Counted from the stretch's first letter, positions 12,706 to 63,687 are shown. The stretch is DNA of 64,000 nt from Tubulanus polymorphus (GCF_964204645.1 NC_134033.1:16128655-16192654); one strand, 5' to 3'. Notes: generated by a model not told the origin, from the sequence alone. A program made the numbers and translations.

Positions 12706-12870
12706 CGAATACATATTTTCAGCCAAAAATTCACACGGACGCATGATACAAAATATCAATGAATTTCACCTACTTGATTTGTGTTCAACATTAATCAGCA
12801 ATCGATGATTAAACAGAACTGCTACATTTCGTATAACACGTCGTGATGATGTTTTCGATATTTAACTCAC

Positions 12871-15077: not shown

Positions 15078-15364
15078 TTACGCGTTTTTCTGTTGCGGTA
15101 CGAGTGCTCCGGCGCGGTTAGCTTCCTCCAGCGTCATCGGGGCGGTCGTGTTCTTACCGGCAGCCGGCGGCGCGGGCGGCGCTGCTCGTTTAGCGCCACC
15201 AACGGTTGGTGTTGGTACAGCAGCGCCACCACCGGTTGGTGTAGGTACAGCTGCACCCCTATCGGTTGGCGTTGGTACATCAGCGCCCTCACCGGTTGCT
15301 GCTGCTGGTACTGGAATAGTATCGGCTGGTTTAGGCTGCGGTTGTAGTGCCGGATTACCAATCC
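15078..15364 (-). CDS. Terminal exon of the Cys micro-exon array: Pro/Ala/Thr/Gly-rich tail
   Basis: Acceptor TTTCAG| at 15365, phase 1. Encodes GIGNPALQPQPKP...(GAAVPTPTGG)x3-like...PQQKNA*. Confidence 0.85.
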
Positions 15365-15569: not shown

Positions 15570-16000
15570 TTTGATGATGTCATAATGGAATTTGTGTAGA
15601 GACAGACATCATTATTCGGAGGTGTTATAGATAACACGGTATTTTGATGATGTCATTAGGGGACTCTTGTGGAGGTAGCCATCTTTATTCGGATGTTCTT
15701 TAATTTGATGACGTCATAAGTAGAATGCCCCGGAGGCAGCCATCTTTATGCAGAGGTTCTTAGATAACTGGGTATTTTGATGATGTCATTAGGGGACTCT
15801 CGTGGAGGTAGCCATCTTTATTGGGAGGTTCTTCAATTTGATGATGTCATAAGGGGACTCTCGTGGAGGTAGCCATCTTTATTGCGAGATTCTTCAATTT
15901 GATGACGTCATAAGGGGACTCTCGTTGAGGTAGCCATCTTAATTGGGATGAGGTTCTTCAATTTGATGACGTCATAAGGGGGACTCACGTGGAGGTAGAC
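15570..16000. repeat. Intronic ~60/73-bp tandem repeat, ~7 copies
   Basis: Unit TTTGATGA(T/C)GTCAT(A/T)AGGGGACTCTCGTGGAGGTAGCCATCTTTATT...; it runs right up to the donor of exon 16013-16060. Confidence 0.9.
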
Positions 16001-16012
16001 TATATAGCTTAC

Positions 16013-19000
16013 CGACACAGTTACCGTGGAAAACCTGTGAACCAGGAGGACAGTAGATTCCTGCGAACAAAAGCAAAATAAAATATCGATAAACGAAGAA
16101 ATACATGATTATGATTGATGGGATTTTTCTCCCGGGAATTTGTTGTCGAGTTTGCGGCCAAATCACCTTCAAACACGAGCTCAGAGTTATTAACTATCAT
16201 AAAAACAGCTGCCTTTTAAAACAAACACACACGCGACGGATTAATGACCAAATTACTAAACGCTGAACAGAAGAAAAAACGTTGAAATAACAAGTCGTTT
16301 TAGGGAACTAATCAGAAACAAAGCAGATACTGCGTACAAATTTACGAATTTTAACAGAAGTCAATGGCGTCGCAGGAGATCTTATAAGTGAAGACGCTCA
16401 ACGCGTGTTCAATGCAGTGTTCGGGCGCCACAATTGACCTTGAACTTGAATTACGGATGTGGATTCGTATCTACCGGAACTGAATTAAGTGTAGACGCTA
16501 CTCGAGTACGAAAAGTGGTTTTCGTCGAACCGGCCGCGTCCATCGACACACGGGTCTGACGAGCTCGTTTACACGTAGCTAATATAACGATTTCCGCAAT
16601 GCAGTGTTAGTCTTAATAAGCTCCTTCAAATATTCAGCGTAAACCGCGCAAAAAAAACGCTCAAGCGGAGTTGGGCGAGTTATAAATAAACGTACAAAGT
16701 AGTTATATTTTTAAGGAGGAACAGTCGTGACGCGTCGACAGTAGTTAGACTTATGAATAATTGAATAATTTAAGCGTTGGAACGAACGACCGACGCCATT
16801 AGAGATAAGTCTGAGAGAACTCTCCGTCAGAAATTGATCGCTCTGAGAATCTCCGCGCAGAGATCGGTTTAATTGCCTTATTATGTTTATAGCTGAATCG
16901 AAAAAAAGTCGAACGTAGATAAGATATAACGTCTGACGCGTTTCAGAACTCGACTGCCATGTATTGATAACAGATCTTAACGGCGAGATTGAGTATGACG
17001 GGTTGTTAAGATTTGATTCTCAGAGTTCTGATTGAAAATGATCTGATCTTGATAGTTGTCGACGAAAATCCCCTGGCTAAAAAAATCAAATGAAATTTAC
17101 CAACCAAATAAATAACAGGGACAATCCCTATTTTAAGATTAAAAAAACCCCATAGGTAAAAATCCCCAAATCTTCGAATTAGGTCTTAATCTGATGAATT
17201 TGAACTAGACTTACGAATGCATCTGCCGTGAGAAACGAAGAATCCGGTGGGACAGTGAGACACTGAAAATAAACAACCACATCGTATAGATCACACAATG
17301 AAATCTATAAGGACCGGGTAAATCGAACTCTATCGTACAGAAAGTAATTTGTAAGGTTTTACTGGCATGTAATACATTGACGTAGCTGTAGCAATCATAT
17401 AAGGTTGGAAACCCGTCAATAAAATATTTTTTCTTTTCTCTTCATAAACCCCAAAGGTTTGCAGATCAATGATACTGCTTGGCAGAAAACCCATTATCGC
17501 TGCTTTGCGGCTATATTCAGGTTTGCTAGGGTCTACGCAGGAGCTGTGGTTCTATTTACTATACTTACATTCACAACGTCCGTTTTCAAAAGAGTAGCCG
17601 ACCGGACAATGCATAACTGAAAATCGATTCAAGAAGAACATATCGTTAGGATAGGATACACCGAGCGGACATCTGCGATTATGATGAGAGGAAGTACGAC
17701 TTGAAACAAAACTTGTTTCCTTTAACAAAACGGACAAAATCTAGCGTGAATTCGTCAAAACATGTCGTGTACCCAGGAGTCGTTAACTTATCGCGTGCCC
17801 CGCGATTTTTACTTATAAAATCCGATTTTGGAAAAAGTGAAGGAAAAATCGTGGCAAACACAAGCTATTATCCGACTTTCGCCGATCCGACATACGCGAG
17901 ATTACTGTATCAACAAATATTTAAGGAAAATATGGCGGAATGTTATGATTCGATAAGGATTTATTTTCTTTTCGTAAATCAGATGGTTTAACGCTAACCT
18001 CCACACTTGTTGTCGACTCGCACGAACGTATCCGGACACGACTTCACTATTATTGAAAACAACACGCAAATAATCAAATTAGAAATTAGAATTTCAGAAT
18101 TTCTTCTAAACGGCGTTGGTTAGGCATACGTACGTTTACATTGGAAGCCGACACTGATATATCCGGGCGGACAATTCAATTCTGTAATATACGATATGAA
18201 TAATTTATGAAAAAAAGAATTTCCTCCAGGTGTCAGTTTCACAAAAACGATATCTCATAAATCGATTTAGATAAATTGAATTTATGAAAAAATTGAATCT
18301 ATAAATAGTTGAACCTTCTTATGAAACTAGAACCCGGTAGAAGTAGAATTTGCATATTAATGCATACATTTGCATACGATTAAAAGCTGAAAATGGTTGT
18401 TGTCATTTTCTCTAGATGCCAGATTGCATCGCGCGCCTAGATATCTATACTAATACTATTTTCTGATAAACTTACTGAAACATTTTCCGTTCCTGTTCTC
18501 CCAGCCTTTCGGGCAAGTTTTCGCTGCAAAAAAAAAACAACGATCGAAATTTACCGAATCACGAAACGTAGAAATAGGAAACTTATCGACGAATCGTCAT
18601 GGAATATTTCCTATATTATTCACATCTATTTATCATTACAAAAAGTGAAAATAGGAAACTTATTCAAATTTAAGTTTCCTATTTTCACTATGAAAACTTG
18701 TTTTGGAATATTTCTTTATAACATTTATATCTATATAGTTATAGATATAAATGTTATAAAGAAATATTCAAAAACAAGTTTTCATGAATAGATCTATTCG
18801 TTCTAGGCTCAGTATGGCTCGGTAGGCTCAATAACTTATCTCACAAATTAAGACTGTAGTCTCAGAGAGTTCGTGTTTTACACCTTAACTTAACGTACCC
18901 TTGCAATGCCCGTCTTGATGAATGTAGCCGACCGGGCAGTGAACCCCTGTAATACAAAATACAGCAATTAATTAGGCTTTTCTTTTTCTAGCCCTGGTTT

Positions 19001-22000
19001 TCCCATTTATAGCTCTTGGGGAAATTTGCCTCGTCGATTGTACAACGAACAGCCGCATGTTTTCGCATAGATCAATCATTTACTTACTATAGCAGTTACC
19101 GTTTTCTAGTACAAAACCAGCGGGACATTGACGAACTGTAGAAATAGAAAATTACTCTTTTCGTACAAGAATCAAGTAGAAGGCATCAGATGTTTTATAG
19201 TCTAGAAACCTACTGTGGCAGTTGTGGGAGTGGGGGACGGGCGTGTGCCAATCTGAACACATTACATCTGCAAAACGAATGGATAAAGTTGAAAAAGTCG
19301 AACTAAACTTCGTTTTCGGTGAATTCAAGATCAGATAAATAACTTACGTAGGCATTTTCCATCGCTCTTCCAATACCCAGCAGGACAGTGAATCACTGTG
19401 AAAAAGAAATCCAATGTGAATTTACGTGAATTGAACTCTTACCATGGAAATTTCAGAATAAATGGAAATTATTTTTGGAACAAAGACACCTACGGACGCA
19501 ATGGGAGTCGACTGCTTTGTAACCAGGCGGACAGTATAACGCTAAAACCATCGAACGAAATAAAATCATTAAAACAAATTGAATAGAATTATTTCGTGGA
19601 CAATAAACAAACGCGTTTTGAATGCTTTAAATACCTTCGCAGTGTCCTAATTTCCTAACCTCACCGGCCGGACATGTTCCTGCGATAGACAGACATTTTC
19701 AAAGTATCACCAATATGTATTAAAAAGACCCAAAATATTGAATATAACGCTCAAGATTGGGTAGAATTTTTCGCATCTTCAGAGATCTATTTTAATAACA
19801 ATAAATCCCCGAAGATGTCCTGGGTAGATGCATTCCACCCGAAACATCAGGGGCCGGTTTTACTGACTGGTATTACCTTCAACCCGGAGGCTAACTCAAT
19901 TCATTATCAATTGAGTTAGCCCCGGGCTAAAAGGTAATACCAGTCTATAAAACCGGCCTCAGTACAACAGATTTTCGTCGTTAAATCTTTAATATTGTGG
20001 GTGCTTTGAATAGACTACACAGATTGCGACTTTGTTAAGTGATTTTGGCATCAAAATATCATCAAACATTCTCAAGAAAATTCATTCATGAAATGAAGTT
20101 CTAAATATCGCGGGTCGAACTCACTGCTGCATTGTTGGCCGATCTTCTCATAACCGGGCGGACATTTCTGAACTGTAAATTGAGAGAACATATTTTTCTA
20201 TCACGTATTTCAAGCTGTATTTTCAAAAAAGAAACCTTTCATATACTAACTCTTGTTTTTCTGGTCATTCCACCTGATGATGGCTGTTAGTCAACAGCCG
20301 AAACGTTGTGGTTTCGTAATAATAAATTTGATAGTATAATTTCAAATTCGAAGTGTGGGATTTCTTCATTTATCTCATTGTCATGTTGTATACTTACGTT
20401 CACAGTTTTGGTTGACAATGACGTAACCCCACGGGCAGTTCAAACCTTAAACATATGAAGCAAACATAGAAGAGAAAACATAGTCTGAGAAATAACACAT
20501 CTACAGGTCTAGTTAACATTATCTCAGTGACCTGTTACTCAAAAGTTGAATATATGGAAGAAGGTTGGTACCAGGGAGGTCTCTGGGGCCGGTTGCATAG
20601 TCATGGCTTAGACTTAAGACCAGTCTAAGACCAACTTACTTCCATAGCAAATCTAACAACTTCAGACCAGTCTTACGATTTAAGACCATTTTTGGTGCAA
20701 CTGGCACCAGGAGTTTACCAATGGATATTTGGCATTTTAGTGGAAATCCTTTTGAGCAACCTGGCCTAGAGTTCGAAATATGTAATTCAAGCAATTTTCT
20801 CCACAGGAAAAACTTACGGACGCATCGATTTCCATCTTTCGTGAAACCGCGAGGACAACTTTCCACTGGATGAGAAAGTAGAAAGAATTCATTGGGATTC
20901 GAACCCAATTGAAATATTTCACAAAAAAATCCGCTATCGAAAATAGAAAACATTCTATTATTACTTACATTCACAGGTTTTATTGTGAGGGTCGGGTATG
21001 TATCTATGGGGACATTCCAAAACTGAAAATAAAAAAGAAAAGTCGAGGTCTTCAAAACCATCATCTGTGATTCTTATTGCTAATCTCGCTTTCTCGTCTG
21101 GATGGTAACGTAGCAACTGTTTCGGTGATCAGCGCCTAGCAACGCCGAACTCAGAACTACCGAAAATGAAAGGCGCAGCAAAATGACTGGGAAATCCAGA
21201 CCGATTCGAATCCAGAGAAAACAACTCTCAGATACAGCCCTGTTAGTTCCCAGAAAACGAAAAACATGCGATGAGTCTATGGACGAGATTTGTATCGGGA
21301 CGAAACGGCACCGACAAGACGAGACGGTGAAAGATATCCACATTTACCCGAATCCGGACCGCACAATCTGTTCGCTTTATGACCAGTGGAACGTGCCATG
21401 CGCTAGGCGGTCGCCTCTGAGAGGTACACAGTGCACATCTATAGCTGTAAGTATGTCATATAGAGGTCACGTGACGTCATATTTTGTTTTCCGGTCGGTT
21501 CAATTCAATTTATCTTCAAACAAAGCATGATACAAGATTTGTCAACCAGTGCTGGAGTCTTTCCGCCATACAAAGTAACAAAAGATATTCTGTGGATTTT
21601 CAAACTTCGTGGTCTGTCATGTCAGACTCTCGTAGTTTGTACTCTCCCAGTTCCACAGTTGTGAGTTAGAGTTAACTCTTGAGTTAAAATCAATTCATTT
21701 TCAATCTCTGAGTCAAATTCAACTCACAACCTGTGGAAGTGCTGGATCCCGATCAATTTTTGCAAGAGGCGCAGTGGCCGAGTGGGTTAAGCCGCCGGTC
21801 ACTGGTCTCGTCAATCCAGGGTTTATGGGTTCAAACCCTGGTGGCGACAGAGTTTCTCGGTCGAAGGTTCTTCTCTGGTCTCTCCCCCATTGGGAAAAAG
21901 AAACGTCGAACCGCTCGTCATGCCCTACGTGGCGCTTAGCGGGTTGAGGGTGTTAAAAAAAAAATCATTTATTGCTGTTATGTACGGCAAGTTTTTAGCA

Positions 22001-25000
22001 CTGGTTAGCAAATAAACTACTATGACGTCACGTGTCAGACCACACTATACATAAAGGATATTAGGAAAACAGAGCCATTTGTAATTTGTATTTTCAATCA
22101 TCGGATATATTCACATTTCAAAATCTCTTCTCGAATATTCTGTCGTCGCAGGTACAGGCGGTTATAGCTTCGATTTTTAAACCGGTAAACCGTTGGAACA
22201 GCGACGATTTGGATCTAATTCTCTGCGACGGACACAAACTACACGTATCGGCGATCAGACAACTGAACGACCGATGTATCTATCCGCAGGGGAACTTCTT
22301 AATGCCCAGCGATATACCGACTGAGTTGATCACAACGGGCGTACCCCCGGGAAAAAAGGTTTTGATAAGCGTCGTTCATTAAGTGCTGATGCCAGTTTTA
22401 TACAGTTCGAGTTGGATAATGTAGCCTAACCTACACATTGGTCGACAAAAACTATAAAACTGGGTTCAGCGGTAAATTACAGAAAACATAACAAATGAGT
22501 CTTTTTCAAGCCAATTTCGAATGAGTTTCGCAGTTGTGTTAAATTTGAACTCAGGATCGAGTTTCCCACTGTTGTGAGTTAGAGTAAACTCATAACTCTG
22601 GATCCAGTCCCACAGTTGGATCCACTGTTAAAGCTAGCTCTGAGACGAGCGAAGTCCGCTGAACTCACAACTGTGTACTAGGCCTGGGCAGAATTGTCTA
22701 ATTCCATAAATAAAATCTAGGTGGTATTTGGCGAAGGTTTGGTCGGAATGATTTCATTAGAGGAGGTCGCTGAAGAGATCGCCGATTTCGTGGACACATT
22801 CCCGTGCGCTTTCCGGAAGGCGATGGCTCCTAAATACATAGGTATTTCATCCGTTGATGCGTTCTTCAGAATTTCGAATCTTTGATTGATTGGAACAAGC
22901 TCTAACTGGTTCTCCTCTCTAGGTGCCATTTTGACGGCGAATGACGAATCGGTGGCCATATTGAAATCACGTGATCGACGCTATCCGTATATGGTGTTAG
23001 ACTCGCACAGACGAGATCGTCACGGATTGTGTAGACCGACCGGTCACGCGGTGTTACTCGCGTTCGAATCGACCGATCATCTTATCAGGTAATCAGACAT
23101 TCGATTTAAGATTTAAGATAATTCAAGGCTGCAGACTGGATACCTATGGTGTTGTGCTACGAACGTGTCACTGAAGCCGGGATCACACGGGCATTTTTGG
23201 CCCGGGCCAAATTTTAGCACGGTTCAAATTATTGCGTGTGAAATGCAACTGGTTCCGCGTTTTCTGCGTGGTTTGCGTGTGTCTGTGAACGCGTTCTCTA
23301 AATAAGCGCGAGCCAAATTTGACTCGGGCCCGATCCGTGCAAGTTTGGCTCATGCCAAATCGTCTCCGTGTGATCGCGGCTTCGTCGAATATATCTGATT
23401 CGGTTTGTATCTGCCAGCCATTTTGTTTCAGATATTACCGGGAACTGGACGAAGAAAACCGACGGCAATTTCAACTGACCCCCGTCTTGATAGCAGACGA
23501 TTTCGACGAGAATGAGTGAAAAAATAGAGAAAAAATCAAAAACATGTTTCGTTTTCAAATAATTCGAGGAGCCTGGTATAAAATCGACAAACGTGAGAAC
23601 GGGTAGTTCTGTGTAGGTTTTAACTGATTCTGTTTGAAATTACGAGCTTTCGCTACTACTGCATAGTAGCTTTATTGACCTAAATCTACTAGTTTATTAC
23701 ACAGTTATATCTGTCTTTATGTGTATCGATTTCAAATGATTCACTGAACTCACCGACACAGTCGTTTCCTTTCATTTCAAATCCAACTGGACATTGCACT
23801 CCTGAAATTAAAAAAAAAAAATGTTTATAGTATTAAGGCATCGTATTTCGAAGAATTCATTCTCATTACTTTCAAGCCTAACCCGTTCCCTTTCAAGCCT
23901 AACCCGTTCCCTATAGCACCCCTCTACTTACTGTGACATCTCATGCCGACCAAATGGTACCCAGGAGGACACATAATCTCTGAAAATGGTTCACGATGGT
24001 TTTGTAAATGAAAAAAACGTAGGATTTGATATCGATGATTTACTACTAACAGTGACACAACTTACTCAAACAGCGGTTCTTGTGAAGTTTATATCCTTGC
24101 GGGCACCGGATTCCTGATTAGAAAACAAAGAACATTAATATCTCAGAAATGATTTCTAATATCGTTCAAAACTCAACGCAATTTCTCCGATTCAGCTGAA
24201 ATACTCACGGATACACTTGTTGCCTTTGATCAATTTGAAATCTTTCGGGCAAATTATTTCTAGAAAGAATAGTACGTGATGAAACGTTACATTCAGTCTC
24301 ATTTCATTGTCTATAACAAATCCTTTCCGAAAAGACGGAGACATCATAAAAATTTTATTTTATTTTCCGACTGATTTGAAATTAGTTTTTACGATTTCAC
24401 TTACTGTAACATTTATCGTTGAGTTTTGTATATTCCTTTGGACAATGGTCAACTGAAATCAAATATATAAATCAATCTTGAATTACGACCAAGCGATGAT
24501 CCTAAGGATTGAACAATACACAAATATTACATTCTGTTTCTAGAAAAAGATAAAAGGAATTCGTGTGAAAACTTACGAACGCATCTGTCATCTTTAAGTA
24601 CGTAATATTTCGGACAAGTTATTTCTGAAAAAAAAATGAAACAATATTCAGTGATTTATGTGTTCATAACGATACAACAGCGCACAGTTGGGTCCCGCAA
24701 TAAAATAATCACTCAGGAACGCTTGAAGAAAAACGCTTAGTTGGAGGGGAAAAGCTAAGACAGCATTGATGTTCCGAAAGTCTTTGAAAATGTTTGAAAA
24801 TGGCTCATAATACTTGAGTGGAAACGTCTGTAGTTTTTTGTTTTTCTATTTCATCGTGGGTTTTCCATCAAATAAGAATATAGACACTTACGTATGCATC
24901 TGTGACCAATTTTCTTGTAACCTTTCGGGCAATCCTTCACTGAAAATGACGATGATTATACCGAAATAAGTGAGAAGGAAATGAATTCTAGATAACTCAG

Positions 25001-28000
25001 AATCGTGAAACTGGGTCTTGGCGGAAGGAATTAATGATCAGATACTCACGGATACATTCCCCGTTGACCAGTTGTGATCCAGGCGGACATTCGGTCCTGA
25101 TACAAGTTTCGTTCACTTTCTTGTAGCCAGTTGGGCAGTGTATAACTACAATACAAACAATATACACGAACGATATTACTTTCATTATAAATTCCTGAGT
25201 TGCTCAACTCTACAGGAAACTCTTACTGTGACAAATTTCAATATCTACATAATATAATTCACATGGGTTTCACGGCATTTGTAATATTTCACCAATTTTT
25301 AAATTCTGAACTGTAGATGTTACTGAGACAATTAATGATCTTCAACGTTTTTCTAAATTTTGTTTTCAAGAAGATGAGTCTACACAAGCTACCGTGTGTC
25401 TACTTACGTATACAGATTTTCCCATCTTTGCTCAGCATGTGACTCGGCGGACAGACATAACCTTAAAAGTAAATGAAAATAACGGGGAATGTTTTTTACC
25501 TCAGTAAATCTGTTGACCGTACTTTTAAAAATCATGATCAGGCTAACCACAACAGACCTAGGATATCAACTGATTACAAATTTCATTGCTGTTTACAAAA
25601 TGACCCGGGAGATTAGGAGAAACAACCTTTCAATTTTTTCTAGCCTTATTATAATATTTTCTAAGAAGTGATCAGGGTTGTTCTATATCTGATACTCACG
25701 TGTACATTTACCGTGTTCCATTACATACGACTCGGGACAAATCGCTGAAAAATGCGCATAGAATATTCATACGTTATGAAATGAACAATGTTTCATGTGA
25801 ACAGAATTTCAGAATGATATAATATACACTTACGCGCGCATTTGGCACCCTTGATTGCGTAACCGACAGGACATTTTATGCCTAGAATCAGAATCAGGTG
25901 ATATTAGAAATAAACTATTTTCTATTTATGTCGAGGTTATTGAGTGATCGGTGAAAACCAGGAACCAGTTTCAGCAGTTCTTGGTTAGAATTTGACCCGC
26001 GCGTTGAGATATTATTGGAATAAACGAATTTTAACACCAAAAAAGTCAAAAAGTGGTCGTAAATCTTATCTGAAGATTGATCTTATGTCATTAGATTGGC
26101 TATAAAACTAAAATGAGCTCAGACTGGTCACAAGTTGTTAGATTAGCTATAGGGTCTTAGACCGGCCTTTAGTAGTTAGTTTGGTTATAGAACTAAAATG
26201 AGTTTGTAAAATGGAGTTGTTAGATTGGTTGTAGAACCATTATGAGCTTAGACCGGTCTTAAGTTGTTAGATTGGTTGTTGAACCATTATGAGCTTAGAC
26301 TGGTCTTAAGTTGTTAGATTGGTTGTTGAACCATTATGAGCTTAGACTGGTCTTAAGTTGTTAGATTAGTTGTTGAACCATTATGAGCTTAGACTGGTCT
26401 TAAGTTGTTAGATTAGTTGTTGAACCATTATGAGCTTAGACTGGTCTTAAGTTGTTAGATTAGTTGTTGAACCATTATGAGCTTAGACTGGTCTTAAGTT
26501 GTTAGATTAGTTGTTGAACCATTATGAGCTTAGACTGGTCTTAAGTTGTTAGATTAGTTGTTGAACCATTATGAGCTTAGACTGGTCTTAAGTTGTTAGA
26601 TTAGTTGTTGAACCATTATGAGCTTAGACTGGTCTTAAGTTGTTAGATTAGTTGTTGAACCATTATGAGCTTAGAGACTGGTCTTAAGTTGTTAGATTAG
26701 TTGTTGAACCATTATGAGCTTAGACTGGTCTTAAGTTGTTAGATTGGTTGTTGAACCATTATGAGCTTAGACTGGTCTTAAGTTGTTAGATTAGTTGTTG
26801 AACCATTATGAGCTTAGACTGGTCTTAAGTTGTTAGATTAGTTGTTGAACCATTATGAGCTTAGACTGGTCTTAAGTTGCTAGATTAGTTGTTGAACCAT
26901 TATGAGCTTAGACTGGTCTTAAGTTGTTAGATTAGTTGTTGAACCATTATGAGCTTAGACTGGTCTTAAGTTGTTAGATTGGTTGTTGAACCATTATGAG
27001 CTTAGACTGGTCTTAAGTTGTTAGATTAGTTGTTGAACCATTATGAGCTTAGACTGGTCTTAAGTTGTTAGATTAGTTGTTGAACCATTATGAGCTTAGA
27101 CTGGCTCTAAATTGTTATATCGACTATAGAACTAATATGCCCTAAACTGATCTTGAATCTAAGCCATGAATGTACAACTGGCACTCCTCGTTTTTGAAAC
27201 TTACGGACACATTTTCCCATAACGCTTTGGAATCCTTCCGGACAAATTCCTGCAATCAAAAATTACAATCAACATCTGTTAATCGATGTTAATTAATGTT
27301 AATAAATTCGTAAATGTAGTTCAACTGAGATATAAATGGATGAATGAATGAATGAATGAATGAATGAGTTGATATTGTGAAGAAAATCTTCCCCGAGATT
27401 TCTTACGTACGTGTACATCTTCCTGTAGAGTTCAACTTCTGTCCTTTCGGGCAAGAGATACCTACAAATAGAACGCCAGTAAATAATAGCAATTCCGTTG
27501 TTGGTCAATTTCGATAGATATTGTTCAGATGATTTCTCTTAGTACGTACGGACGCAAGTTTGACCATTTTTCGTGTAACCAGGTGGACAGAAAACAACTG
27601 TGGAGAAACGATGAAAAAAACATAATAATACCCAGCCAGACTTTTTTATCAGTCAATAGTACAAAAATACCACTCAGGGGTCAGTTACTCAAAATTTGGT
27701 TATAGTTAACCAGCGGACAGTTGACTTAGTCACAATTTAAAGTTCATTGTTACTATGGTATTTATCCGCCGGTTTCCTTTAACTAACTTTCGAGCAACTG
27801 ACACCGGAATTGTTTCATGAACTAAATTCATGAGCTACGTTTGAGGATTTAAACATATGTTCTACCATTTTCAAAGCTACATTAGGATTAGATGATAGTA
27901 TCTTAAGTTGTTCATGAGTCAGGTTTGTTTGGAATACACACATTATGCACATCCATTAAAAAAGATGATGTTCTACTCACGTGTGCAGTTGCCCTGTTCG

Positions 28001-31000
28001 TTTAACTTGTAGCCTTTTCGACAAATATATCCTTGATTTAGAAATAGAGAAAAACATAAAATATGATTATCACATATATCTATTTATCATATCGTCACAC
28101 CTTATTACATTGATCTCATGATCATGTTGAACTTACGGATACATTTGCCGTCTTTTTGATGATACATTTTCGGACAGCGAACTGCAATGGAATGGATATG
28201 ATCGGATTATTACGCATAGACGCAAACCGAGTCCTTCCTTATCAAGGAAGGCAAGTAAGTGAAGCATTACAGGAGATGACTATTAAGATTACGTCGAAAG
28301 ATAGATATTACCTCAAGGAAATTTTCGGACCCTTTTTATTCTTAGGTGTAGGATTTTATAAAACCCTACCAACCCATAGTCCAATCCCTCGTTACCAAGA
28401 TATTTCAGAAACTATGGTAATCGTAAACTATCAAAACTATCTCGGACATGCTCTTACTTACCCACACAACTCTGTCCCATTAGGAAATATCCCTTGGGGC
28501 ATTTTGTAACTGAAAAAGAACAGAAATAAATTCGAATCTGAAATTGTAAAGGGTCTTAAGTTTCAGTGGTCAGAGGTTATTTAGGATATACTAACGGATG
28601 CATTTTTTGCCGATTTTCTTGTAGCCTTCCGGACAAACGACTAAAACATACGACAAAAATCAACCATTTATCATAATTATTTCAATCTAATCAGAATTCA
28701 TTTCTATGCATTGATTTTCAACCTAACGCGCTAACCTGTACATTTTCCTTTGATAAGAACCATTCCCTTCTTGCACGAGTATCCTAGGAAATAGATAATA
28801 GAAATATTCTAGTACATTGTACAAGCAACAAAAAAGGACTTTTAACCCTATCCAGCTAAAATAGGAGTCCTTTATGATCGAGGAGCTCTGGTCTGACATT
28901 TCCCGAGCCGATTGGGGTAAAAGATCTGTGGCTACTTACGCACGCATTTGTTATCGGAAATCCTATATCCCTTCGGACACGAGTGAACTGGATAATTAAA
29001 AGATAACAAAATCATTAATTTGATTTTGACATCGAAAAAAACTACATAGATAAAGTTAGTAGAGTTTGTTTAAAAACTTACGAACACATCTGTAATCTTT
29101 GGTTAGGATGTAGCCTTGTGGACAAGTGTAGTCTACAAAATAATTTCGTTAGATTTTGTTTATAAAGGAGAAGTGATGGAGGAACCGTGTTAACCTGGTG
29201 TCGAATCGGTAAAACGTAAAGACAGGATTGGTTATTTAGTTTGATTTAAGATACGAGCTTTTAGCTACTAATATAGCTTCATCAGGCAAATGAGCTATTG
29301 AGCTTCTAAAATACAAATTAATACCGAAGATTCTATCTTAGATTTTATAAAACGAATTGATTCTATTTTTTCAAAGTTGATGTTAGAACCTGAAAGTTAA
29401 CTTACGAACACAGAACGCGTTCTTCGGCATGTAACCTACGGGGCATTTGGCTGAAAAATTCAAATCATATGCGCATAGATTATGTAGATACGCATATCGT
29501 CAAGAACAAGTGATAACTGTATAAGTGAAAGGTTTAAGTTTAATATGTCGAATGTGAACAATACTGTGACGTCATTTGCCGAGTCTCGGAATGTTTCGTC
29601 TCTGAAGTTTTATTTTTTCAATCTAATGAGATCAGATGAATACTTTGTGATAGTTTCGACTCACCGACGCATTTGGTTCCCATTAAATGATGACCTTTAG
29701 CGCAGATGACTCTGATGCACTGTTTACCGAACTGTTTGAACCCAACCGGACATTGAGTAACTAGAAAAACAAAAATATGTATCACGACAATATGTTATGT
29801 TATGAATTTTATCGCATTAAATTAGAGATTAATTGTAAGTAATCTAATGCAGACACATTTTAAAGTGTCCTATTCAGTGCCAGTCATTGCTTTAAGGCAC
29901 TTGCAACATTTAGAAGTATATTTACAGCCAAACCCGCTTAATCCGGATCGGCTTAATCAGATTTTAGTTCATTCTGGACATTTATTTGCGGTCCGTTTGT
30001 TCATTAAAATACGAGAAAATGACTTTCTATCCGGATTTTCCGTAAACCGGACGAATTTCGTTCGTCCCAAACGATCCGAATTAAGCGGATTCTACTGTTT
30101 TCAAAAATCCTATATTTGTTAGAAACAGTACCGGTATAAAACATAACTAAATAAGCCATTATGCCTGGCTAAAATCATAAGTCTTGAACAATTAAAAATG
30201 TGTATCATTTCTAAATCATTTTAAAGTTTATAGGACCACATTCTCCCCCTCACTTACTGATACATTTTCCTTCTTTCGTCATTCCTTGAGGACAGTGATA
30301 ATCTGAAAATTTAGAAATATATCTTTCACCTCTTTTGTTCCGCTTTCAAACACGTGGCACGCAAAATATTTGGGATAAGATATCGATACTTACGGATACA
30401 TTTTCCGGCCAGAAGTTGGAATTTTTCCGGGCAGGCAACGACTGAAAAGTGCATGAAATATTTCATCAGCAGAAAGAATTGAAATGAGATTATTTTATGG
30501 GAATATAAGTGTAGCTCTTGATACTTACGGGTACATTTTCCAGTTGAATCTAATTTGTATCCGGGATGGCAGGTGTATCTGATACAGATACCGTCGCTGA
30601 TTCTGTATCCGGGCGGACAGGTCACTGTGTAATAATAAAACCATCGAACATTTATGAATTCATACTCAGTGAAATATACAGGGTTGAATGAGACTGAATC
30701 GAGTACAACTTCCTTGTGGGGGATTTACTTTAATATGTTTCCACAGTATATCAGAAAAGAAAGATCCTCCCTGTTGACTTTGAACAGTAAACCTTGCATA
30801 AGTCGGATCGGCGAAAGTCGGATTAATCGTTTGTATCGGATGAATATTGATTTTCCCCATTTTCCCGTCTATTTTTCAATTCATAATCCAAAGTCGAGTA
30901 CTTTTATTGGCCACAAAATAAAAAACTATAAAAACCGAAATTTTGAGTGATATATTCTTCCCATTGCAGTTTGATTCCTCTTCCAGGCCTGTCCCGGGTT

Positions 31001-34000
31001 TGAAATCGACGATACCTATCAGCGGTCGTTATTTCAGTTGTGGTTATTGTATTAGAATAAGAAATGAACCCAAAATATTTCAGCGTTTTTGAATCATTTC
31101 TTGTTCCGACGTTACGCAACGTTTAAATGTGCTACAATTTTCGATACTTACTGACACATTTCTCGTTCAGCACAACGTAACCTTTCGGACATTTTACACC
31201 TAAAAAACAGATATAATCCATTAATTCAATGGGTAAAGCGATAAATGTTGAAAACGTCGCTAGATTTTTTAAAAGCTTTCGAAATCTTTGAGACACGATT
31301 GCTGTGACTGTTTCGGGCAAACTTTCACTTACGCACGCATCTTCCAGCACGTTTTGTGTAACCTTTCGGGCAGACAGCTGAAAATGGAACAAATTTTCCG
31401 ATGAGTCTGATAACATCCAATGTCTATTTCAAGTAAAGCGAGACGGATAGTACTTTAACAAAATTCTCTATTTGAAGTACAAGCTTTAGCCTCATCGGGT
31501 AATTAATGAGGTGAATTATTTCAACCCTATTTGTATGTCGGGTGCCATCGTCAATTTTGCGGAACCTTCGAAACGATATAAAATCTTTTAGAAATGGAAT
31601 GCTTTAGTCCAGCTTCCAATCAGCGCTGGTAAAATTGTAAGACCTATATACGGATATGTACTACTGATATTCACTGAGTTATGGCACCTAACACTCGTTC
31701 AAACAAGTTGAAATAGTTCATGGACACGAATCCAATTTCAAATCGATAATCGATCACTTACAAACACATTTTCCATCTTTCGTTACAACTTCTCCTTTCG
31801 AACAGCTATGCACTGCAAATTAAATAACAAATAGTTTGAAATAGATTTGTTTCTCGTTACAAACAATCAGCTCGAAACCGAAGAAAAACTTGTTCAACTC
31901 ACGGACGCATTTGTCTCCAACTTTGATGTAACCACGCGGGCAGTCGACCACTAGAAATGATATCATAAATTTGCATAAATTGTTGCGTAAAATAATAAAT
32001 TATCATAAATTGTTACTTAATAGGGGACTCTATACATGATGAGGGGAGAGGAGTTGTGTTAATCTGTTAATTAACCATCAAAGTAATATCTTTCTTTTAT
32101 GTTTACTGTTGTGTCATGTAAAAGTTCAAATGAATTACGCCATATTTTGAAATAGAACTTACGAATGCACTTTTTGCCTTCTAGTTTATAGTTGTGCGGA
32201 CACAGCATTTCTGTAAATACGTACGTGAAAAATAGAACATTGTCATAACATTGAGGATTCTGGATTATAATCATAATTCGTAGTTCATGAAATACGCCAC
32301 GTCAAGCCAAGTTTTACAAAAAAAGGTTAAAATCATAAATCTATGCGGGGTGAACTGAATTGATAATGAAATAAAAGTTGATTGATCGTGTTGAAATTTT
32401 CTTAACACTAGGACCATGTTTAAAGCTGTTTCTAATTTTCTTTTTTAAATCTTCATGAAAAATAAATTAAAGATATAAATCACTCACTGATACAATTCTG
32501 TGCGAATTTCACGTAGCCTTTTGGACAAATAACTGTAAAAATACAAAAATGGCGTAAAAATCAGAAAAAATCATCGATCGCGACATCTATCGTTCATCGA
32601 ACGCAATTTACTAACCGATACAGTGCCCGTCAGCAGCCATTCTAAAACCTTTCGGACACGAGTAACCTAGCGATAGAAATTCAGAAATCATCACTGAATT
32701 ATATACCGAGGTATTCTTATTTTCGAAGTATAGACACCGGTAGAGCTGGAATACTCACGAATACATTTGTTGTCTTTTTTCATATAACCCTCCGGGCAGG
32801 AACAAACTATCGATTGAGATAAGACATCAAAAAATGAAAATAGAATAATGCACCGATGAAAATAGAATATAGTTAATCACTGTAAAATATTTCTTTCAAA
32901 TTTATGTTGGTTCGCTAGATATTCATCATATGTTATAATATTTTGTCTGCAATCTTGCTGGTTTTCTACTTCTTAATTGCAAATAAACTATTATTATTAT
33001 GTATTTTACTTACGGACGCATTTGTTGCCGACCAATTTGTAATGCTCAGGACAAACCATTTCTATTTACATAAAAGTAGAAACGCATTTCAAAGATTCTT
33101 CGTTGATTTCTGAATTTTCGAAAGTTCAGTTTTCGAGTTGTACATGGATTTTGCTTTTGAGTAAATTGGATTTTTATCGGCTGAACTTACGTAAACAGGT
33201 GTTCCCACGTTTGATAAAACCGGGTGGACATTTTACGGCTAAAAACAAAACAAGAATTAAATTATCGAATTAAAAGACACAACATTTCTACAGAGACCAT
33301 TGTCAGGTGTAAAATATATTCAAAGACTCTCTCAAACTCTGTTGGTCGTCTCCAGAGAGAGTCCAAAACTTTAGGAGTTCGTCTTTTGATTTCTTATTTC
33401 AATTCTTGATAAAATATATATCGTTCTTAATCGTTTGAATTTGGTTTTAATGGGTTTTAATCTTAACTCATGAAATTAATATCAGTAATTTTTTCATAGA
33501 TCTTACCTAGACAGGCAGTGATTTTATCCAGCGGGCACTTATCACCTAAAGACAAATATATTACGTTTACATATACTACAGGAAGATTATATAAAATCCC
33601 ACACTAAGAATAAATAAGGAGTCAGAATTCTTCCTTGAATAGCCATATTCAAGAAAAGGATAAAAAAAATCCAAAATAATTCCTTGAGCTTGTATCTATT
33701 CAACGTTTCGACTATATCCTAAAAGTCATCTTAAAGAACCGATAAGGAAAACAAAAATTCCTAAATGTTTCCTTGAGCTTTGAGTTTATTCAGTGTTTCG
33801 ATAACATCCTAATTAATCATCGTTAGGAGAATGGCTCTTTTAGTCTAAGTGAGGAATTCCGGGATTCTATCATTCATCGTTTCATCGATTAGTGTTTCGT
33901 CGATAGCTATAACTGTAAGGTTTATTGATTACCCTTTGCTTTAAAACTAAGACTAAAACACGGTCCCGGTTACTTACGATGACAGCGAGTTTTTATCTGT

Positions 34001-34235
34001 ACAAACCCGGTCGTACAATGCACTTCTGTAAACAGGAAAATGAAACGAGGAAATCACCGTAAATTCGCAAGATTCGAACGATATTATTAAGATAATATGT
34101 ATAAAGATATGATCATTAAGATAACATTTCATTGTTTGTTCGACTTTTTGAATTTTTGAAAATTGTTTGATTACTTACTCATGCATTTTGCTCCTACTCT
34201 GTGAGTTTTATGCGGGCAATGCCAGTTTTGAGTCG
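16013..34235 (-). CDS. Array of 56 phase-1/phase-1 micro-exons encoding 58 CPxG(Y/F)xxxx(x)xxC two-cysteine modules (2811 nt, 937 codons)
   Basis: Exons, each with AG/GT ends and a length that is a multiple of 3: 34179-34235, 33978-34025, 33507-33545, 33191-33238, 33014-33061, 32759-32806, 32616-32666, 32488-32532, 32163-32210, 31903-31950, 31762-31812, 31333-31377, 31152-31199, 30529-30624, 30394-30441, 30258-30302, 29665-29760, 29406-29450, 29082-29132, 28940-28987, 28736-28783, 28596-28640, 28462-28509, 28137-28181, 27981-28031, 27550-27597, 27411-27461, 27205-27249, 25834-25881, 25700-25744, 25408-25461, 25227-25244, 25050-25145, 24892-24939, 24577-24624, 24405-24452, 24209-24259, 24066-24113, 23932-23979, 23754-23801, 20969-21022, 20818-20865, 20398-20445, 20125-20172, 19635-19679, 19494-19541, 19348-19395, 19214-19267, 19088-19135, 18899-18946, 18476-18523, 18134-18181, 17999-18046, 17569-17616, 17215-17262, 16013-16060. 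Examples: VKCPPGFIKRGNTCL, VCPEGYKKIGKKCI, IYCPPGSQVFHGNCV. Confidence 0.9.
18644..18785. repeat. Two abutting AT-rich palindromes
   Basis: 18644-18689 has perfect 19-bp arms and an 8-nt loop. 18690-18785 has 46-bp arms with one mismatch and a 4-nt loop. Confidence 0.9.
19850..19960. mobile_element. Fully palindromic ~110-bp MITE (Tourist/PIF-like termini)
   Basis: GGGGCCGGTTTTA-GACTGGTATTACCTT...GGCTAACTCAATT / AATTGAGTTAGCC...AAGGTAATACCAGTC-TAAAACCGGCC, with TCA on both flanks. Confidence 0.75.
20270..20311 (+). ncRNA. Minimal type I hammerhead ribozyme (Penelope/retrozyme type)
   Basis: CCAC-CUGAUGA-U-GGCUGUU(AGUC)AACAGCC-GAAA-CG-UU|GUGG: intact core, 7-bp stem II, 4-bp stem I, vestigial palindromic stem III, and AATAAA just downstream. 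Confidence 0.8.
20585..20708. mobile_element. MITE family B (CTTAGACTGGTCTTAAG core)
   Basis: TIRs GGGGCCGGTTGCA / TGCAACTGGCACC; homologous to 43155-43294, 57206-57345 and 25961-27184. Confidence 0.75.
21183..23519 (+). CDS. Nested antisense gene: herpesvirus-tegument-like (peptidase C76/VTD-type) deubiquitinase, 281 aa, 5 exons
   Basis: Exons 21183-21446, 22152-22358, 22721-22841, 22923-23088 and 23432-23519 are all GT-AG (phases 0,0,1,2) and give 846 nt of open frame. Motifs: SLYDQ..RGTQC84TSIAVQAVI..WNSDDLDLILCDGHKLH..GAILT..SVAI..YMVLD224SH226RRDRHG..GHAVLLAFESTDHLIRY..QFQLTPV. Confidence 0.82.
21766..21964 (+). mobile_element. tRNA-derived SINE in intron 1 of the nested gene
   Basis: A box TGGCCGAGTGG, B box GGTTCAAACCC, a non-tRNA body and an A10 tail. 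Confidence 0.75.
23174..23382. mobile_element. MITE family A copy in intron 4 of the nested gene
   Basis: TIRs AAGCCGGGATCACACGG / CCGTGTGATCGCGGCTT; homologous to 726-999. Confidence 0.75.
25961..27184. mobile_element. MITE family B copy expanded by an internal satellite
   Basis: GGAACCAGTT left end, AAAAGTGGTCGTAAATCTTA and TCTAAGCCATGA...CAACTGGCAC right end match family B and enclose the 47-bp array. Confidence 0.65.
26234..27116. repeat. 47-bp tandem repeat, ~18.5 near-identical copies
   Basis: Unit GAACCATTATGAGCTTAGACTGGTCTTAAGTTGTTAGATT(A/G)GTTGTT; starts at 26234, 26281, 26328 ... 27082, with one 2-bp insertion near 26673. Confidence 0.97.
29925..30097. mobile_element. Tc1/pogo-type MITE
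   Basis: TA|CAGCCAAACCCGCTTAATCCGGATC...GATCCGAATTAAGCGGATTCTACTG imperfect TIRs. Other elements with similar termini lie near 17870-17909 and 30785-30840. Confidence 0.6.
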
Positions 34236-34849
34236 CTGAAAATATATGTAAACTTGCTTACTTCATTCTCTCGAGCAGCATCCCGTCACGCTCGTTGGTC
34301 ATGAGGGCTCTGCCGCTACACAGCTTGCATCGTCCTCACATTAACATTTCATAGGGTCCCCTTTTACTTCCCCGGACCAACCCCACCACTACAAAAATCC
34401 TAAATCTGTAAGTTTGATAGTACGCGTGAATAAACATCATGAAGATCTACGTAAATAGGTCTCTGTTAACAAATCTGTTTTATGATGGAAGCTATTTTTT
34501 AGTACCATTTTGTACACAAGGCAAGGGCTCGTAGTATCAGAGTGTTGTAGGTAGTGTAAAAACGGAAATATGTTAATCCAGTGTCTACAATTTACCCTTG
34601 TGATTTTGTATGTAGTTTCCCTACGACGTCATGCATTCAGCGATGTAATTGAAATACCGATGTGTTTTTTTAAACAATGAAAGCTATAGCGTGTGTGACA
34701 TCTGCTGTCGTATGAAGCACATAATCAGCGTCACATTAAATACAACTAATATCCCACAGCATGTGTCCAGATAAAAGATCATTAATCGATTCGACGAATG
34801 TGATATTTGCGCGAGTGAAATTTTCCAGCATATGACACTTATACATCGT

Positions 34850-34921
34850 GGGGGTATAGCTCAGCGGTAGAGCATTCGACTGCAGATCGAGAGGTCCCTG
34901 GTTCAAGTCCGGGTGCCCCCT
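34850..34921 (+). tRNA. trnC-GCA: tRNA-Cys(GCA)
   Basis: GGGGGTATAGCTCAGCGGTAGAGCATTCGACTGCAGATCGAGAGGTCCCTGGTTCAAGTCCGGGTGCCCCCT: canonical cloverleaf, GCA anticodon, T5 Pol III terminator downstream. Confidence 0.97.
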
Positions 34922-35523
34922 CAATTCTTTTAATTAGCTTTTTATCCAGTTACTTGTTTCTATCGAAACATACTTCCTGTTTTTTTTCTTGTTTCTTGAC
35001 GTGCTTTTATCATAACGTTGGTATGTGCAACGAGGGTTGGGGGTATAAATAGGGGGTTTCTTACTGGTGGTTAAGGATGGGAGGTGAATGCAAGAGTGAC
35101 GTGTTGTATAAGTATATATATATATATCACGCAGTAGTGAAATAAAGTTAGTTGAGTATATAGAGAAAAATCGTTATACGTTGAATCGATTGAGTGGTCC
35201 AAGAAGCCCGGTAATATTTTCGTGTTAAAATTACAGTATTTTGTATAGATGTATGCTTTGTCATAAAGGATATACAGAAAGATAGTTTGCTTTCCAAATT
35301 TTCAAGTTAGCATACATTTGCATTTATTGAGCACTCGTTAGAGATTATGATATGCAAATTTATGCGTGACGTTTATTCGAAATATTATTGTTTCTACGGC
35401 TCCGATTGTTAATGATATTCATGCAATTTACAACCGATGTCGTAAAAAGATCAATAATACATCGATAAAACGAATGGAAATTTTCATTTTAAAATTTTCA
35501 AACATCTGGCACGGTTTATAGAA

Positions 35524-35595
35524 GGGGGTATAGCTCAGCGGTAGAGCATTCGACTGCAGATCGAGAGGTCCCTGGTTCAAGTCCGGGTGCCCCCT
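35524..35595 (+). tRNA. trnC-GCA: tRNA-Cys(GCA), identical second copy
   Basis: 72 nt identical to 34850-34921, with T-tracts downstream. Confidence 0.97.
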
Positions 35596-36081
35596 TCCGA
35601 AACTTTTCATTTTTTCCCCAGTTTTTGTTTGTTTTAGTTTTTAATGAATTTCGGTTGTTACAGGGTTCAGGGCTCAGTGAGTAAGGTAGAGTTAAAAGTG
35701 GCAGCAGAAATCCGATGCTACTCAACCTTCAGAAAACCAGGGCTCACGTCCTTAAGAGAATGATCTTCAATCATCAGACCGGATTTAGAGTTTTAGGTCT
35801 CAAATTGTAACGGTTTGACTATTGATGTCCTAAATCATACGACTTGTCTAAAGTTGTTTGACTAAGGGACTTATCGAATGGTCAAGAGATGACGTTAAGT
35901 TATCCAAGACCGGTCTGAAATCTAAGCCTTGAATGCAACTAGCACCAGAAGTCGCGTGTTCCCAAAAAAGCAAAATGAAATAAACATAAAACGAAAGGAC
36001 GGATATCGTTTACAAAATTTCTTCTTATATTTTGTAACATCAGACAATTTTTTTTCACTCGATTCAAAAAAAGAAATAAAC

Positions 36082-36087
36082 TTTATT
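36082..36087 (-). promoter_or_regulatory. Polyadenylation signal (proximal 3' end)
   Basis: AATAAA on the minus strand 105 nt after the stop at 36192, followed by a U-rich tract. Confidence 0.65.
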
Positions 36088-36191
36088 GAAATATAACAAT
36101 TTCGGTTTAAAAAGCCGTTTTCACAATTATCATTGAATGTTCGTTAACCGATAATTGAGATTAGATTGTTCCGTCGATCGTTTGAAAGAGT

Positions 36192-37288
36192 CTATGGTCC
36201 GAAGAAAGGAAGCTGATCCGGCCTACGGATCGGCCTGGCGAAGGCGCGGGCTCGTTGGCGGTATCTGCTACGTTTAGCCGCTTCACTTTGTAGAAATCTG
36301 TGCCACAGCGACAACCTGTTAAACTGTCGTCCGGCGGCGAAAGCGGAATTTCGTGGCCGTTGGATAGCGCGAGGATTAGCTGCACGTCCCCCTAACGATC
36401 CACCAGCAGCCTGGTTAGCTGGTATGTGAGGAGGCGGTTGCGGCTTGACGGGTGGTTCTGCTCCGGCCTGTGAAGTAGCTCCATGAGCTGCAGGTTCACT
36501 AGGCACCTGGGGTTTCATTCCTCCTGGACTTCCAGGAGCCTGCTGAGCATCAGGTTCACTAGGCACCTGGGGTTTCATTCCTCCTGGACTTCCAGGAGCC
36601 TGCTGAGCAGCAGATTCACTAGGCACCTGGGGTTTCATTCCTCCTGGACTTCCAGGAGTCTGCTGAGCAGCAGATTCACTAGAGGGCTGGGGTTCCATTG
36701 CTCCTGAACTGCCGGGGACCGGCTGGCCAGCTTGTTTACTAGGCGCTTGGGGTTTCATTTCACCTGCACCTCCAGGAGCCTGCTGTTGGCCAACTGGTTT
36801 CCCAACTCCAGCACCTCCTCGCATCAATGCGCTCCTCAGACGATAAGCCGCCATGACTGGTGACTCTTGTTTACGTTCCCAGCCACCGGGTGGCATTATC
36901 GGGTGTTCGGTGACCTTTTTTTCCGGATGTAACCACGGTTGCGGCTCGTGCCCGTGACGCATGCGCCATCTCATTCCACCGGGGAACTCCTGCGGTTTAG
37001 GAACCGGAGCGTGTAATCCGACATTCTGGGCGAAGTGTGGAATACCAGAATGGGCTCCTAGGATTTTACCTGGTTTCTTAGGTGGTGGTGGAGGTGGTGG
37101 GGCAGTAACTGGCAGGTGGGTGGTTGTAATTTCTGGTGGATGTGTGGCGGGTGGGCGTGTGAAGAGTGGTTCTGGGGCGGGTGCTGTAGTCGGTGGTTTA
37201 GTCGGCGGTTCTGTTGGTTTCTCCGTAGTGACTTCTGGTTCCTTGTGACAGTTGACTTTTGCTTTACCACACTCGGAGAAAGCCCCGA
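36192..37288 (-). CDS. Proximal terminal exon: PT-rich stalk, 20-aa GSPGGMKPQVPSESAAQQAP repeats, Arg-rich C-terminus
   Basis: ORF 36192-37301 with an acceptor at 37289 and a 60-bp tandem repeat at about 36490-36790. Confidence 0.85.
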
Positions 37289-63648: not shown

Positions 63649-63687
63649 CTGCAATACGTTAAGTAAAACAGCATCAATATTTTTTGT

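Follow-up and report, generated by a model that had tools for sequence, protein, structure and literature searches.

Here, we identify an array of 55 to 56 micro-exons in the palaeonemertean ribbon worm Tubulanus polymorphus (Nemertea) and suggest that it probably encodes a rod of disulfide-stapled hairpins, which would make up the C-terminal part of a giant protein secreted into matrix or mucus, with fibronectin type II (FN2) domains, VWA domains and mucin-like repeats. The array occupies positions 16013-34235 on the minus strand of a 64-kb window (OZ123234.1:16,128,655-16,192,654, assembly GCA_964204645.2); the window is the whole stretch of DNA analyzed, and all coordinates are counted within it. 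Nearly all exons of the array encode the consensus x-x-C-P-x-G-[YF]-x6-C-x. The unit is a single-disulfide β-hairpin of the cEGF, EB or furin-like kind, here used alone, with the pairing of its two Cys residues presumed. One two-Cys hairpin per exon, 55 to 56 times in a row, is a rare, collagen-like build of a cysteine-rich rod.

An array of one-loop micro-exons

Several lines of evidence define the array. First, exons were called as AG-exon-GT cassettes with a length that is a multiple of 3, open in phase 1-1 and encoding two Cys residues, with the best splice sites chosen and light curation by hand. This procedure gave 56 exons, all phase 1-1, with 2811 nt, or 937 codons, and 118 Cys residues, and these totals are identical to the ones given in an earlier note on this DNA. 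The commonest exon size is 48 nt (32 exons), followed by 45 nt (nine), 51 nt (six), 54 nt (three) and 96 nt (three), while sizes of 57, 39 and 18 nt occur once each. One loop is encoded by 52 exons, two loops by each of the three 96-nt exons, and a single Cys by the 18-nt exon. Second, a strict cassette filter applied to the array region found 51 cassettes on the minus strand and none on the plus strand, compared to a mean of 0.36 and a maximum of 3 in 100 Markov-1 randomizations. Likewise, the bare motif C-x(1,2)-G-[YFWH]-x(3,9)-C occurs 62 times in the minus-strand frames of the window versus six times in its plus-strand frames. Third, the splice sites are close to consensus. The donor is GTAAGT in 32 and GTGAGT in 10 exons (42/56 together), and the acceptors are CAG preceded by a polypyrimidine tract (35), TAG (18) or AAG (three). 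The introns have a median length of 153 nt, 20 of them measuring 78-110 nt, and the guanine-plus-cytosine content is 45.3% in exons versus 35.5% in introns. The features of the array are the following.

16013-34235 (minus strand): micro-exon array of 55-56 exons, 45-57 nt plus three of 96 nt, documented by exon list, splice sites, chance control and unit alignment
30529-30624, 29665-29760 and 25050-25145 (minus strand): double-unit exons of 96 nt with two loops each
24522-24539 (minus strand): doubtful exon of 18 nt with a single Cys, requiring a 37-nt upstream intron and using the donor GTGTAT

Because the 18-nt exon requires a 37-nt intron and adds an odd, unpaired Cys, it is probably not real. 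Thus, the count of 56 in the earlier note was reproduced by the scan but falls to 55 without this exon. Once it is removed, the sole odd Cys of the array is a third Cys in the unit at 32759-32806 (minus strand), which stands two residues before the loop (C-S-C-P-E-G-Y...) and could serve as a site for an intermolecular disulfide. Among the introns of the array, one of 1323 nt is filled by a 47-bp satellite (19 copies with 98% matches, 26215-27117); an inverted 62-bp piece related to this satellite lies at 20612-20673.

Each unit consists of a 12-residue loop, C-P-x-G-[YF]-x6-C, and a linker of three to four residues, and the intron always lies in the linker in phase 1. The spacing is exactly C-x10-C in 46 of the 57 loops found in the array; among these 46, Pro is at position 2 in 43, Gly at position 4 in 37 and Tyr or Phe at position 5 in 39. 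In the 50 single-unit exons that were aligned, both Cys residues are invariant (50/50) and Pro is conserved in >90%. The linker inside a 96-nt exon (C-x4-C) is as long as the one created by splicing adjacent 48-nt exons, which leaves four residues between Cys residues. All 56 exons fall in the class of phase 1-1 extracellular modules that is associated with exon shuffling.

Based on Pfam, on relatives found with HMMER and on structure models, the unit is a lone hairpin as present in the last loop of EGF and in furin-like and EB modules. Single-unit micro-exons are too short for Pfam scoring; of the double-unit exons, 30529-30624 matches cEGF (PF12662) with 29.4 bits (cutoff 26.6), 29665-29760 scores 16.6 bits and 25050-25145 does not match. 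The likeness to the last EGF loop proposed in the earlier note is supported by the first of these scores, cEGF being the C-terminal sub-domain of cbEGF (calcium-binding EGF), and its view that the unit is not a full EGF domain holds as well: there are two Cys residues per 16 residues, and the EGF, EGF_CA and hEGF models match neither any exon nor a 231-residue intron-free run of loops from a giant exon of the same gene. This run, which we used as a stand-in for four to six concatenated micro-exon units, has no Pfam match. The EB module (PF01683, cutoff 24.3 bits) stays below threshold with 23.8 bits on 47745-48143, 18.8 bits on 25050-25143 and 13.1 bits on 54015-54521, and Furin-like (PF00757) and Furin-like_2 (PF15913) match none of the window sequences tested. 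No oocyst-wall-type (COWP) family appeared in the general Pfam scans of the window and of the relatives, which did not include a direct comparison with COWP.

A HMMER search of 1.84 billion representative proteins with the 231-residue run returned 87 matches (best E 6.6e-22, best identity 46%). The relatives are tandem CPxGxxxxxGxC proteins that have the loop consensus and spacing in common with the run over 100-200 residues at 30-46% identity, and they come from a giant-virus-like metagenome contig, bacteria (one named "EB domain-containing protein"), Entamoeba invadens and oyster. Cut-outs of the relatives match the Pfam families Furin-like, EB, DUF4215, Furin-like_2 and cEGF; in the alignment of 29 sequences, Furin-like is found in seven and Furin-like_2 in six, and the window's own run matches none of these. 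Because their gene contexts are unrelated, the relatives are module-level kin and not orthologs. The oyster protein XP_078341419.1 (1139 aa) is encoded by a 4.3-kb gene with few introns and not by a micro-exon gene. The closest relative (436 aa, 46% identity; GROS21-1_SAMEA9561428_METAG-scaffold_9, 10001-11311) has as neighbors on its scaffold an mRNA-capping enzyme, an SNF2 helicase, T5orf172 and a thioredoxin, a giant-virus-like context. Among the 20 matches considered by name, most were unnamed metagenome proteins and none was nemertean, and the 87 matches contained spliced array fragments only in the form of one chance 7-mer. A homolog search with a 1481-aa exon, in which the run spans residues 476-706, gave 182 word candidates, none of them significant, in a search that covered products up to ∼2600 aa. 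A sequence search of the PDB with the run gave only chance-level matches.

The AlphaFold2 model of the run, built with an alignment of 28 relatives, has a mean predicted local distance difference test (pLDDT) score of 84.8 and consists solely of paired short strands, with one hairpin per loop. For the 31-residue double-unit exon at 30529-30624, the pLDDT score is 80.6 and a hairpin is predicted in the first loop. Foldseek comparison of the loop-run model with the PDB gave weak matches with TM-scores (template modeling scores) <0.2, all to cysteine-rich rods, namely the EGF strings of NEL/NELL2 and DLL1, CD40/TNFR, the cysteine-rich region of the insulin receptor and a Chlamydomonas mastigoneme. 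Such low scores would be expected for a flexible rod.

The array is old, is devoid of any higher-order repeat and is held by purifying selection on the protein, as had been proposed before, because its units have no DNA similarity, their identity falls at the third codon position and their similarity does not vary with distance. Self-BLAST of the region from 15 to 36 kb detected no similarity between exon-intron units, which rules out recent tandem duplication, and found only the intronic 47-bp satellite, small inverted repeats and a duplicated tRNA. The 48-nt exons have a mean nucleotide identity of 46%, with neighbors no closer than distant units, and identity at codon positions 1, 2 and 3 is 53%, 54% and 33%. 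Finally, the amino acid similarity of the loops is flat at lags of 1-8 units (0.28-0.34 versus 0.30 for all pairs), ruling out a period of three, as in split EGF domains, or any other super-repeat.

The probable gene around the array

The same module recurs upstream of the array on the same strand. From the 5' to the 3' side of the minus strand, the features are the following.

61395-61454, 61557-61613, 62352-62423 and 62541-62594 (minus strand): one-loop micro-exons
62057-62221 (minus strand): fourth FN2 exon, Pfam fn2 2.1e-17
60993-61232 and 60255-60446 (minus strand): third VWA domain, split, Pfam VWA 6.8e-13 and 2.9e-04
56744-59006 (minus strand): further one-loop micro-exons at 56744-56803, 56947-57000, 57819-57893, 58731-58790 and 58917-59006
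54869-55054, 56095-56229 and 56428-56598 (minus strand): three FN2 exons, Pfam fn2 1.1e-12, 1.5e-16 and 7.5e-18
55635-55691 and 55832-55888 (minus strand): one-loop micro-exons among the FN2 exons
52712-54547 (minus strand): giant phase 1-1 exon of 1836 nt with ∼10 loops, then 48-bp Lys/Gly/Pro/Glu repeats, then one loop
52182-52504 (minus strand): three to four micro-exons with one loop each, separating the two giant exons
47750-52045 (minus strand): giant phase 1-1 exon of 4296 nt with Lys/Ser/Gly/Thr-rich tandem repeats alternating with intron-free C-x10-C runs
41361-47427 (minus strand): further one-loop micro-exons among Lys/Glu/Pro/Ala-rich linker exons, for example at 41597-41653, 44554-44604, 44694-44750, 45053-45100, 46675-46725 and 47371-47427
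39471-39896 (minus strand): second VWA domain, C-terminal half, Pfam VWA 4.9e-09
37572-38252 (minus strand): VWA domain exon, Pfam VWA 3.9e-26
36192-37301 (minus strand): open frame with a Pro-rich exon and 60-bp repeats, just upstream of the array
15078-15364 (minus strand): probable terminal exon with a phase-1 acceptor, a 94-residue Pro/Ala/Thr-rich tail and the stop codon TAA at 15078-15080

Altogether, ∼25 additional one-loop micro-exons lie at 41361-62594 (minus strand). The two giant exons, whose repeats are Lys/Ser/Gly/Glu-rich, together encode ∼40 C-x10-C loops without introns, of which ∼16 follow each other at 50070-50762. Because the two kinds of loop align in the profile-profile comparison of hhalign (96.6% probability, E 4.8e-10), the micro-exon units and the intron-free loops of the giant exons are the same module. 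The giant exons contain no Pfam family above threshold. Gel-forming mucins have VWD-C8-TIL assemblies and a cystine-knot end around Ser/Thr/Pro-rich repeats. On the large exons, VWD, C8 and CTCK have no Pfam match, in a scan that ended at the 5' limit of the window, and TIL scores a sub-threshold 15.6 bits (cutoff 24.5). The Pro-rich exon has no Pfam match. The Pro/Ala/Thr-rich tail has neither a hydrophobic anchor nor a Pfam match; an AATAAA lies ∼160 nt downstream of its stop codon, and judged from these signals 15078-15364 is the probable terminal exon. A 61/133-bp tandem repeat (15636-15998) is located directly 3' of the last micro-exon, within the presumed last intron.

Between 62594 and 15078, the loops, FN2 domains, VWA domains and giant exons all share the minus strand and phase 1-1, and good splice sites accompany the phase 1-1 models of the FN2, VWA-part, giant and upstream loop exons. 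No convincing exon with a Met and a signal peptide was found in 34236-37400 or in 62595-64000, and the 5' end of the gene was not found within the window. Because strand, phase and module are the same throughout and no start exon was found in these two intervals, we suggest that 62594-15078 forms a single gene that extends 5' past the window. This gene would span at least 47 kb and encode ∼4700 or more residues within the window, with the array as its 3' third. Thus, the bounds given in the earlier note would cut the gene short: the array appears not as a stand-alone gene but as the C-terminal part of a larger gene that also carries intron-free copies of the module.

Alternatively, the array and the Pro/Ala/Thr tail could be a transcription unit of their own, apart from the FN2/VWA/mucin-like gene upstream, which would be compatible with a structural role. 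A gap of ∼2 kb with two tRNA genes between the array and the Pro-rich exon, as well as the unsettled donor of that exon, fit this idea. However, the first array exon (34179-34235) starts at a good phase-1 acceptor and without a Met, the one candidate in 34236-37400 that opens with a Met ends at a poor donor (GTAAAA) and does not resemble a signal peptide, and the upstream exons share strand, phase and module with the array. We therefore consider a separate gene unlikely.

The two tRNA genes, in the intron just upstream of the array, are identical tRNA-Cys(GCA) genes at 34850-34922 and 35523-35598 (plus strand), 674 bp apart. Cys codons in the array are TGT (76) and TGC (42), and the gene encodes well over 250 Cys residues; the proximity of tRNA-Cys genes to a Cys-rich array is probably a coincidence. 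Elsewhere in the window, 1236-2378 (minus strand) holds a rhodopsin-type, intronless-looking gene for an adenosine-receptor-like G protein-coupled receptor, with 100% identity to the T. polymorphus RefSeq protein "adenosine receptor A2b-like" (444 aa), which has one more 5' exon. Over 13,468 bases, the contig of that receptor gene and the window are identical, which places the window on chromosome OZ123234.1. The ortholog of this receptor gene in Lineus longissimus lies within a CFAP61 intron with no related gene nearby, and local synteny is not conserved. Arrays of a 39-bp repeat family are found outside the giant gene (7317-7649 and 12354-12710) and inside one of its introns (40060-40152), and an (AACATC)n hexamer microsatellite of ∼67 copies (3106-3635) creates long spurious open reading frames on both strands.

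Ordered or combinatorial splicing

The earlier note had raised the possibility that the array is a combinatorial cassette. In such a cassette, alternative inclusion of symmetric micro-exons would yield isoforms of different length and surface, an idea also put forward for the micro-exon genes of schistosomes. In its favor, any skip stays in frame, because every exon is phase 1-1, and a minority of exons have weaker splice sites and could be skipped (e.g., 17999-18046, 28736-28783, 19635-19679 and 27981-28031). The introns split a codon between its first and second base. If exons recombined freely, the last base of an exon should therefore not match the first two bases of its genomic neighbor in particular, and we compared the observed joins with 20000 shuffles of exon order.

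The 55 consecutive joins encode Arg (15), Leu (14), Lys (five), Val (five), Ala (four), Gln (three), His (three) and a few others, including one Pro but no stop codon, Cys or Gly. The entropy of the junction residues is 2.97 compared to a shuffle mean of 3.46, and none of the 20000 shuffles was as low. Junctions giving a stop codon, Cys, Pro or Gly occurred once against a shuffle mean of 7.9 (p = 0.0007); random joins would give them at ∼13% of junctions. The outcome was unchanged when the 18-nt exon was omitted. The fit is visible in individual exons: of the six exons that start with C, four are preceded by an exon ending in G, a rare kind, so that Ala results, and only one is preceded by an exon ending in C, the commonest kind, which yields Pro. 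Among the 1485 possible non-neighbor joins, 23 make a stop codon at the split codon, including two of the 54 single-exon skips, and seven make Cys. Thus, the notion that any subset of exons can be joined is correct for the reading frame, which every skip preserves and which leaves 98.5% of non-neighbor joins with a sense codon, but not for these 23 joins.

Selection thus acts on the product of consecutive joins. The co-adaptation of the junctions, the consensus splice sites and the short introns jointly favor ordered, constitutive splicing over a free combinatorial cassette. The 20 introns of 78-110 nt are typical of efficient, intron-defined constitutive splicing, and equally long runs of the module lie within single exons of the gene, where no choice of exons is possible. 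Altogether, we found no positive evidence for the cassette, the split codons being tuned to the genomic neighbor and not to a general partner, and we regard it as improbable. Slightly less probable still is a regulated version, in which the choice among the 55 hairpin exons would vary with the gland cell or life stage and so adjust how long or stiff a secreted fiber or mucus protein is, or what surface it presents. If it were true, it would be a structural-protein counterpart of the variation in titin PEVK or schistosome micro-exon genes, and protein diversification based on micro-exons would have arisen a second time, independently and outside flatworms. Alternative exon use would sharply raise the interest of the locus.

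A proposed hairpin rod and its relation to known systems

These findings support a model whereby each 48-nt exon encodes one two-stranded β-hairpin, presumably closed by its own disulfide, plus a linker. If spliced consecutively, the exons would encode a string of ∼58 hairpin beads, forming a spacer or rod that resists proteases and shear and is comparable to tandem EGF or furin-like arrays. The rod would be attached to domains that bind collagen or matrix (four FN2 and three VWA) and to hydrated, mucin-like Lys/Ser/Gly/Thr repeats, and its role would most likely be structural, in mucus, a tube, basement membrane or other extracellular matrix. We suggest that repeated duplication of a symmetric unit, a 48-nt exon with its intron, built up the array long ago, that the three 96-nt exons are most simply units whose intervening intron was lost, and that elsewhere in the gene the module multiplied within exons. 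The disulfide-beaded fiber or wall protein envisaged in the earlier note fits the AlphaFold2 models and the FN2, VWA and mucin-like context.

Some points weigh against the hairpin-rod model. We infer the transcription unit, secretion, disulfide pairing, constitutive splicing and structural role alike. Secretion is deduced from the types of domain, because the signal peptide lies outside the window, and the unity of the gene from strand, phase and the absence of internal start and stop exons. Disulfides may be paired within a loop, as we presume, or between adjacent loops; some exon skipping would be compatible with the junction test; and the tissue and function of the product are guesses. Moreover, the scan of 1.84 billion proteins yielded nothing with >46% identity to the loops of the giant exon, and the gene's own annotated product therefore seems to be absent from protein collections.

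Another explanation is that three consecutive exons make up one six-Cys EGF-like domain, in which case the array would belong to an ordinary EGF-repeat protein with extra introns. The cEGF match of a double-unit exon and the EGF strings among the Foldseek neighbors point in this direction. However, all units have one consensus and a uniform Cys spacing of C-x10-C-x3/4, their similarity is flat across lags, no full EGF model matches any exon or the loop run, and the AlphaFold2 models contain independent hairpins; split EGF domains are thus very unlikely. That the exons are remnants of a decayed or unexpressed gene, open by chance, is the least credible explanation, because a few degenerate units (33507-33545, 19214-19267 and 20969-21022) stand against Cys residues invariant in 50/50 aligned units, saturated third but conserved first and second codon positions, 55/55 sense junction codons biased to Arg, Leu, Lys and Val, and consensus splice sites retained at every unit.

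Modules of this type and their tandem arrays are already known and occur widely, and extracellular modules are as a rule encoded by symmetric phase-1 exons. In the literature on micro-exon cysteine repeats, nemertean mucus proteins and the EB module, neither the gene nor its architecture was found described; specifically, we found no report of 55-56 successive micro-exons in which a lone two-Cys hairpin is all that is encoded, or of a gene that contains both intron-rich and intron-free arrays of such a hairpin. The locus is an unusually clean natural case of one structural bead per exon beside intron-free runs in the same gene. It lends itself to asking whether repeat arrays expand through the duplication of exons or of units inside them, how introns disappear, for which the three 96-nt exons are informative, and how very short exons are recognized when introns measure ∼90 nt. 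It also suggests that a hairpin with one disulfide, normally seen only as part of EGF, EB or furin-like domains, can alone be the repeat unit of a long extracellular rod. Studies of nemertean mucus have so far focused on toxins, and the gene offers a first candidate for a major structural protein of nemertean secretions or matrix.

An EGF-like domain has six Cys residues in ∼30-40 residues and three disulfides (1-3, 2-4 and 5-6). The array has in common with cEGF, the Cys5-Cys6 loop of EGF, the motif C-P-x-G-[YF]-x-x-x-x-G-x-C and the two-stranded hairpin, but it is without the N-terminal part with four Cys residues and repeats the loop alone ∼58 times, and two of the three double exons are below the cEGF threshold. 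The EB module is a ∼52-residue unit with eight Cys residues. EB (PF01683), furin-like (PF00757, PF15913) and Myxococcus-type DUF4215 proteins have, like the array, tandem C-x-x-G-x5-G-x-C hairpins with short linkers; however, their units are larger (six to eight Cys residues or CxxC pairs), the array unit is a single two-Cys loop, and on the window's own sequence all of these models stay below their cutoffs. The tandem CPxGxxxxxGxC proteins of bacteria, protists, the giant-virus-like contig and oyster have the same loop but no or few introns. Apicomplexan oocyst wall proteins differ in having type I and II repeats with six or more Cys residues and a His-rich spacing, and the host of the array is an animal.

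Schistosome micro-exon genes are described as having exons of 3-81 bp that are inserted symmetrically (10.1101/2023.06.21.545858). The array resembles them in its strings of symmetric micro-exons, which fill most of the region for a secreted product, and has no sequence relationship with them. Coding mostly in symmetric exons ≤81 nt is true of 16013-34235 except for the three 96-nt exons but not of the whole gene, which has exons of 4296 and 1836 nt. The products of the schistosome genes are small, stand-alone secreted proteins whose genes have a longer first exon for the signal peptide, long introns, no cysteine-loop module and documented exon skipping. By contrast, the array belongs to a giant multidomain gene, starts at an acceptor with no Met or signal-peptide exon nearby, has introns of mostly 80-400 nt, encodes a structural module in each exon, and has junction codons that point to ordered splicing. 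The parallel drawn in the earlier note is thus apt for exon geometry, and beyond that it is an analogy.

Fibrillar collagen genes consist of 54-bp exons (45/54/99/108 bp) in phase 0-0 that encode Gly-X-Y triplets and grew by exon-plus-intron duplication, and the PEVK exons of titin encode disordered spring segments and are heavily alternatively spliced. As in these genes, one structural repeat is encoded per short symmetric exon, and the exon sizes of the array cluster at the unit (45-54 nt) and its double (96 nt). Unlike in collagen and PEVK, the exons are in phase 1-1 and the repeats would be hairpins closed by disulfides.

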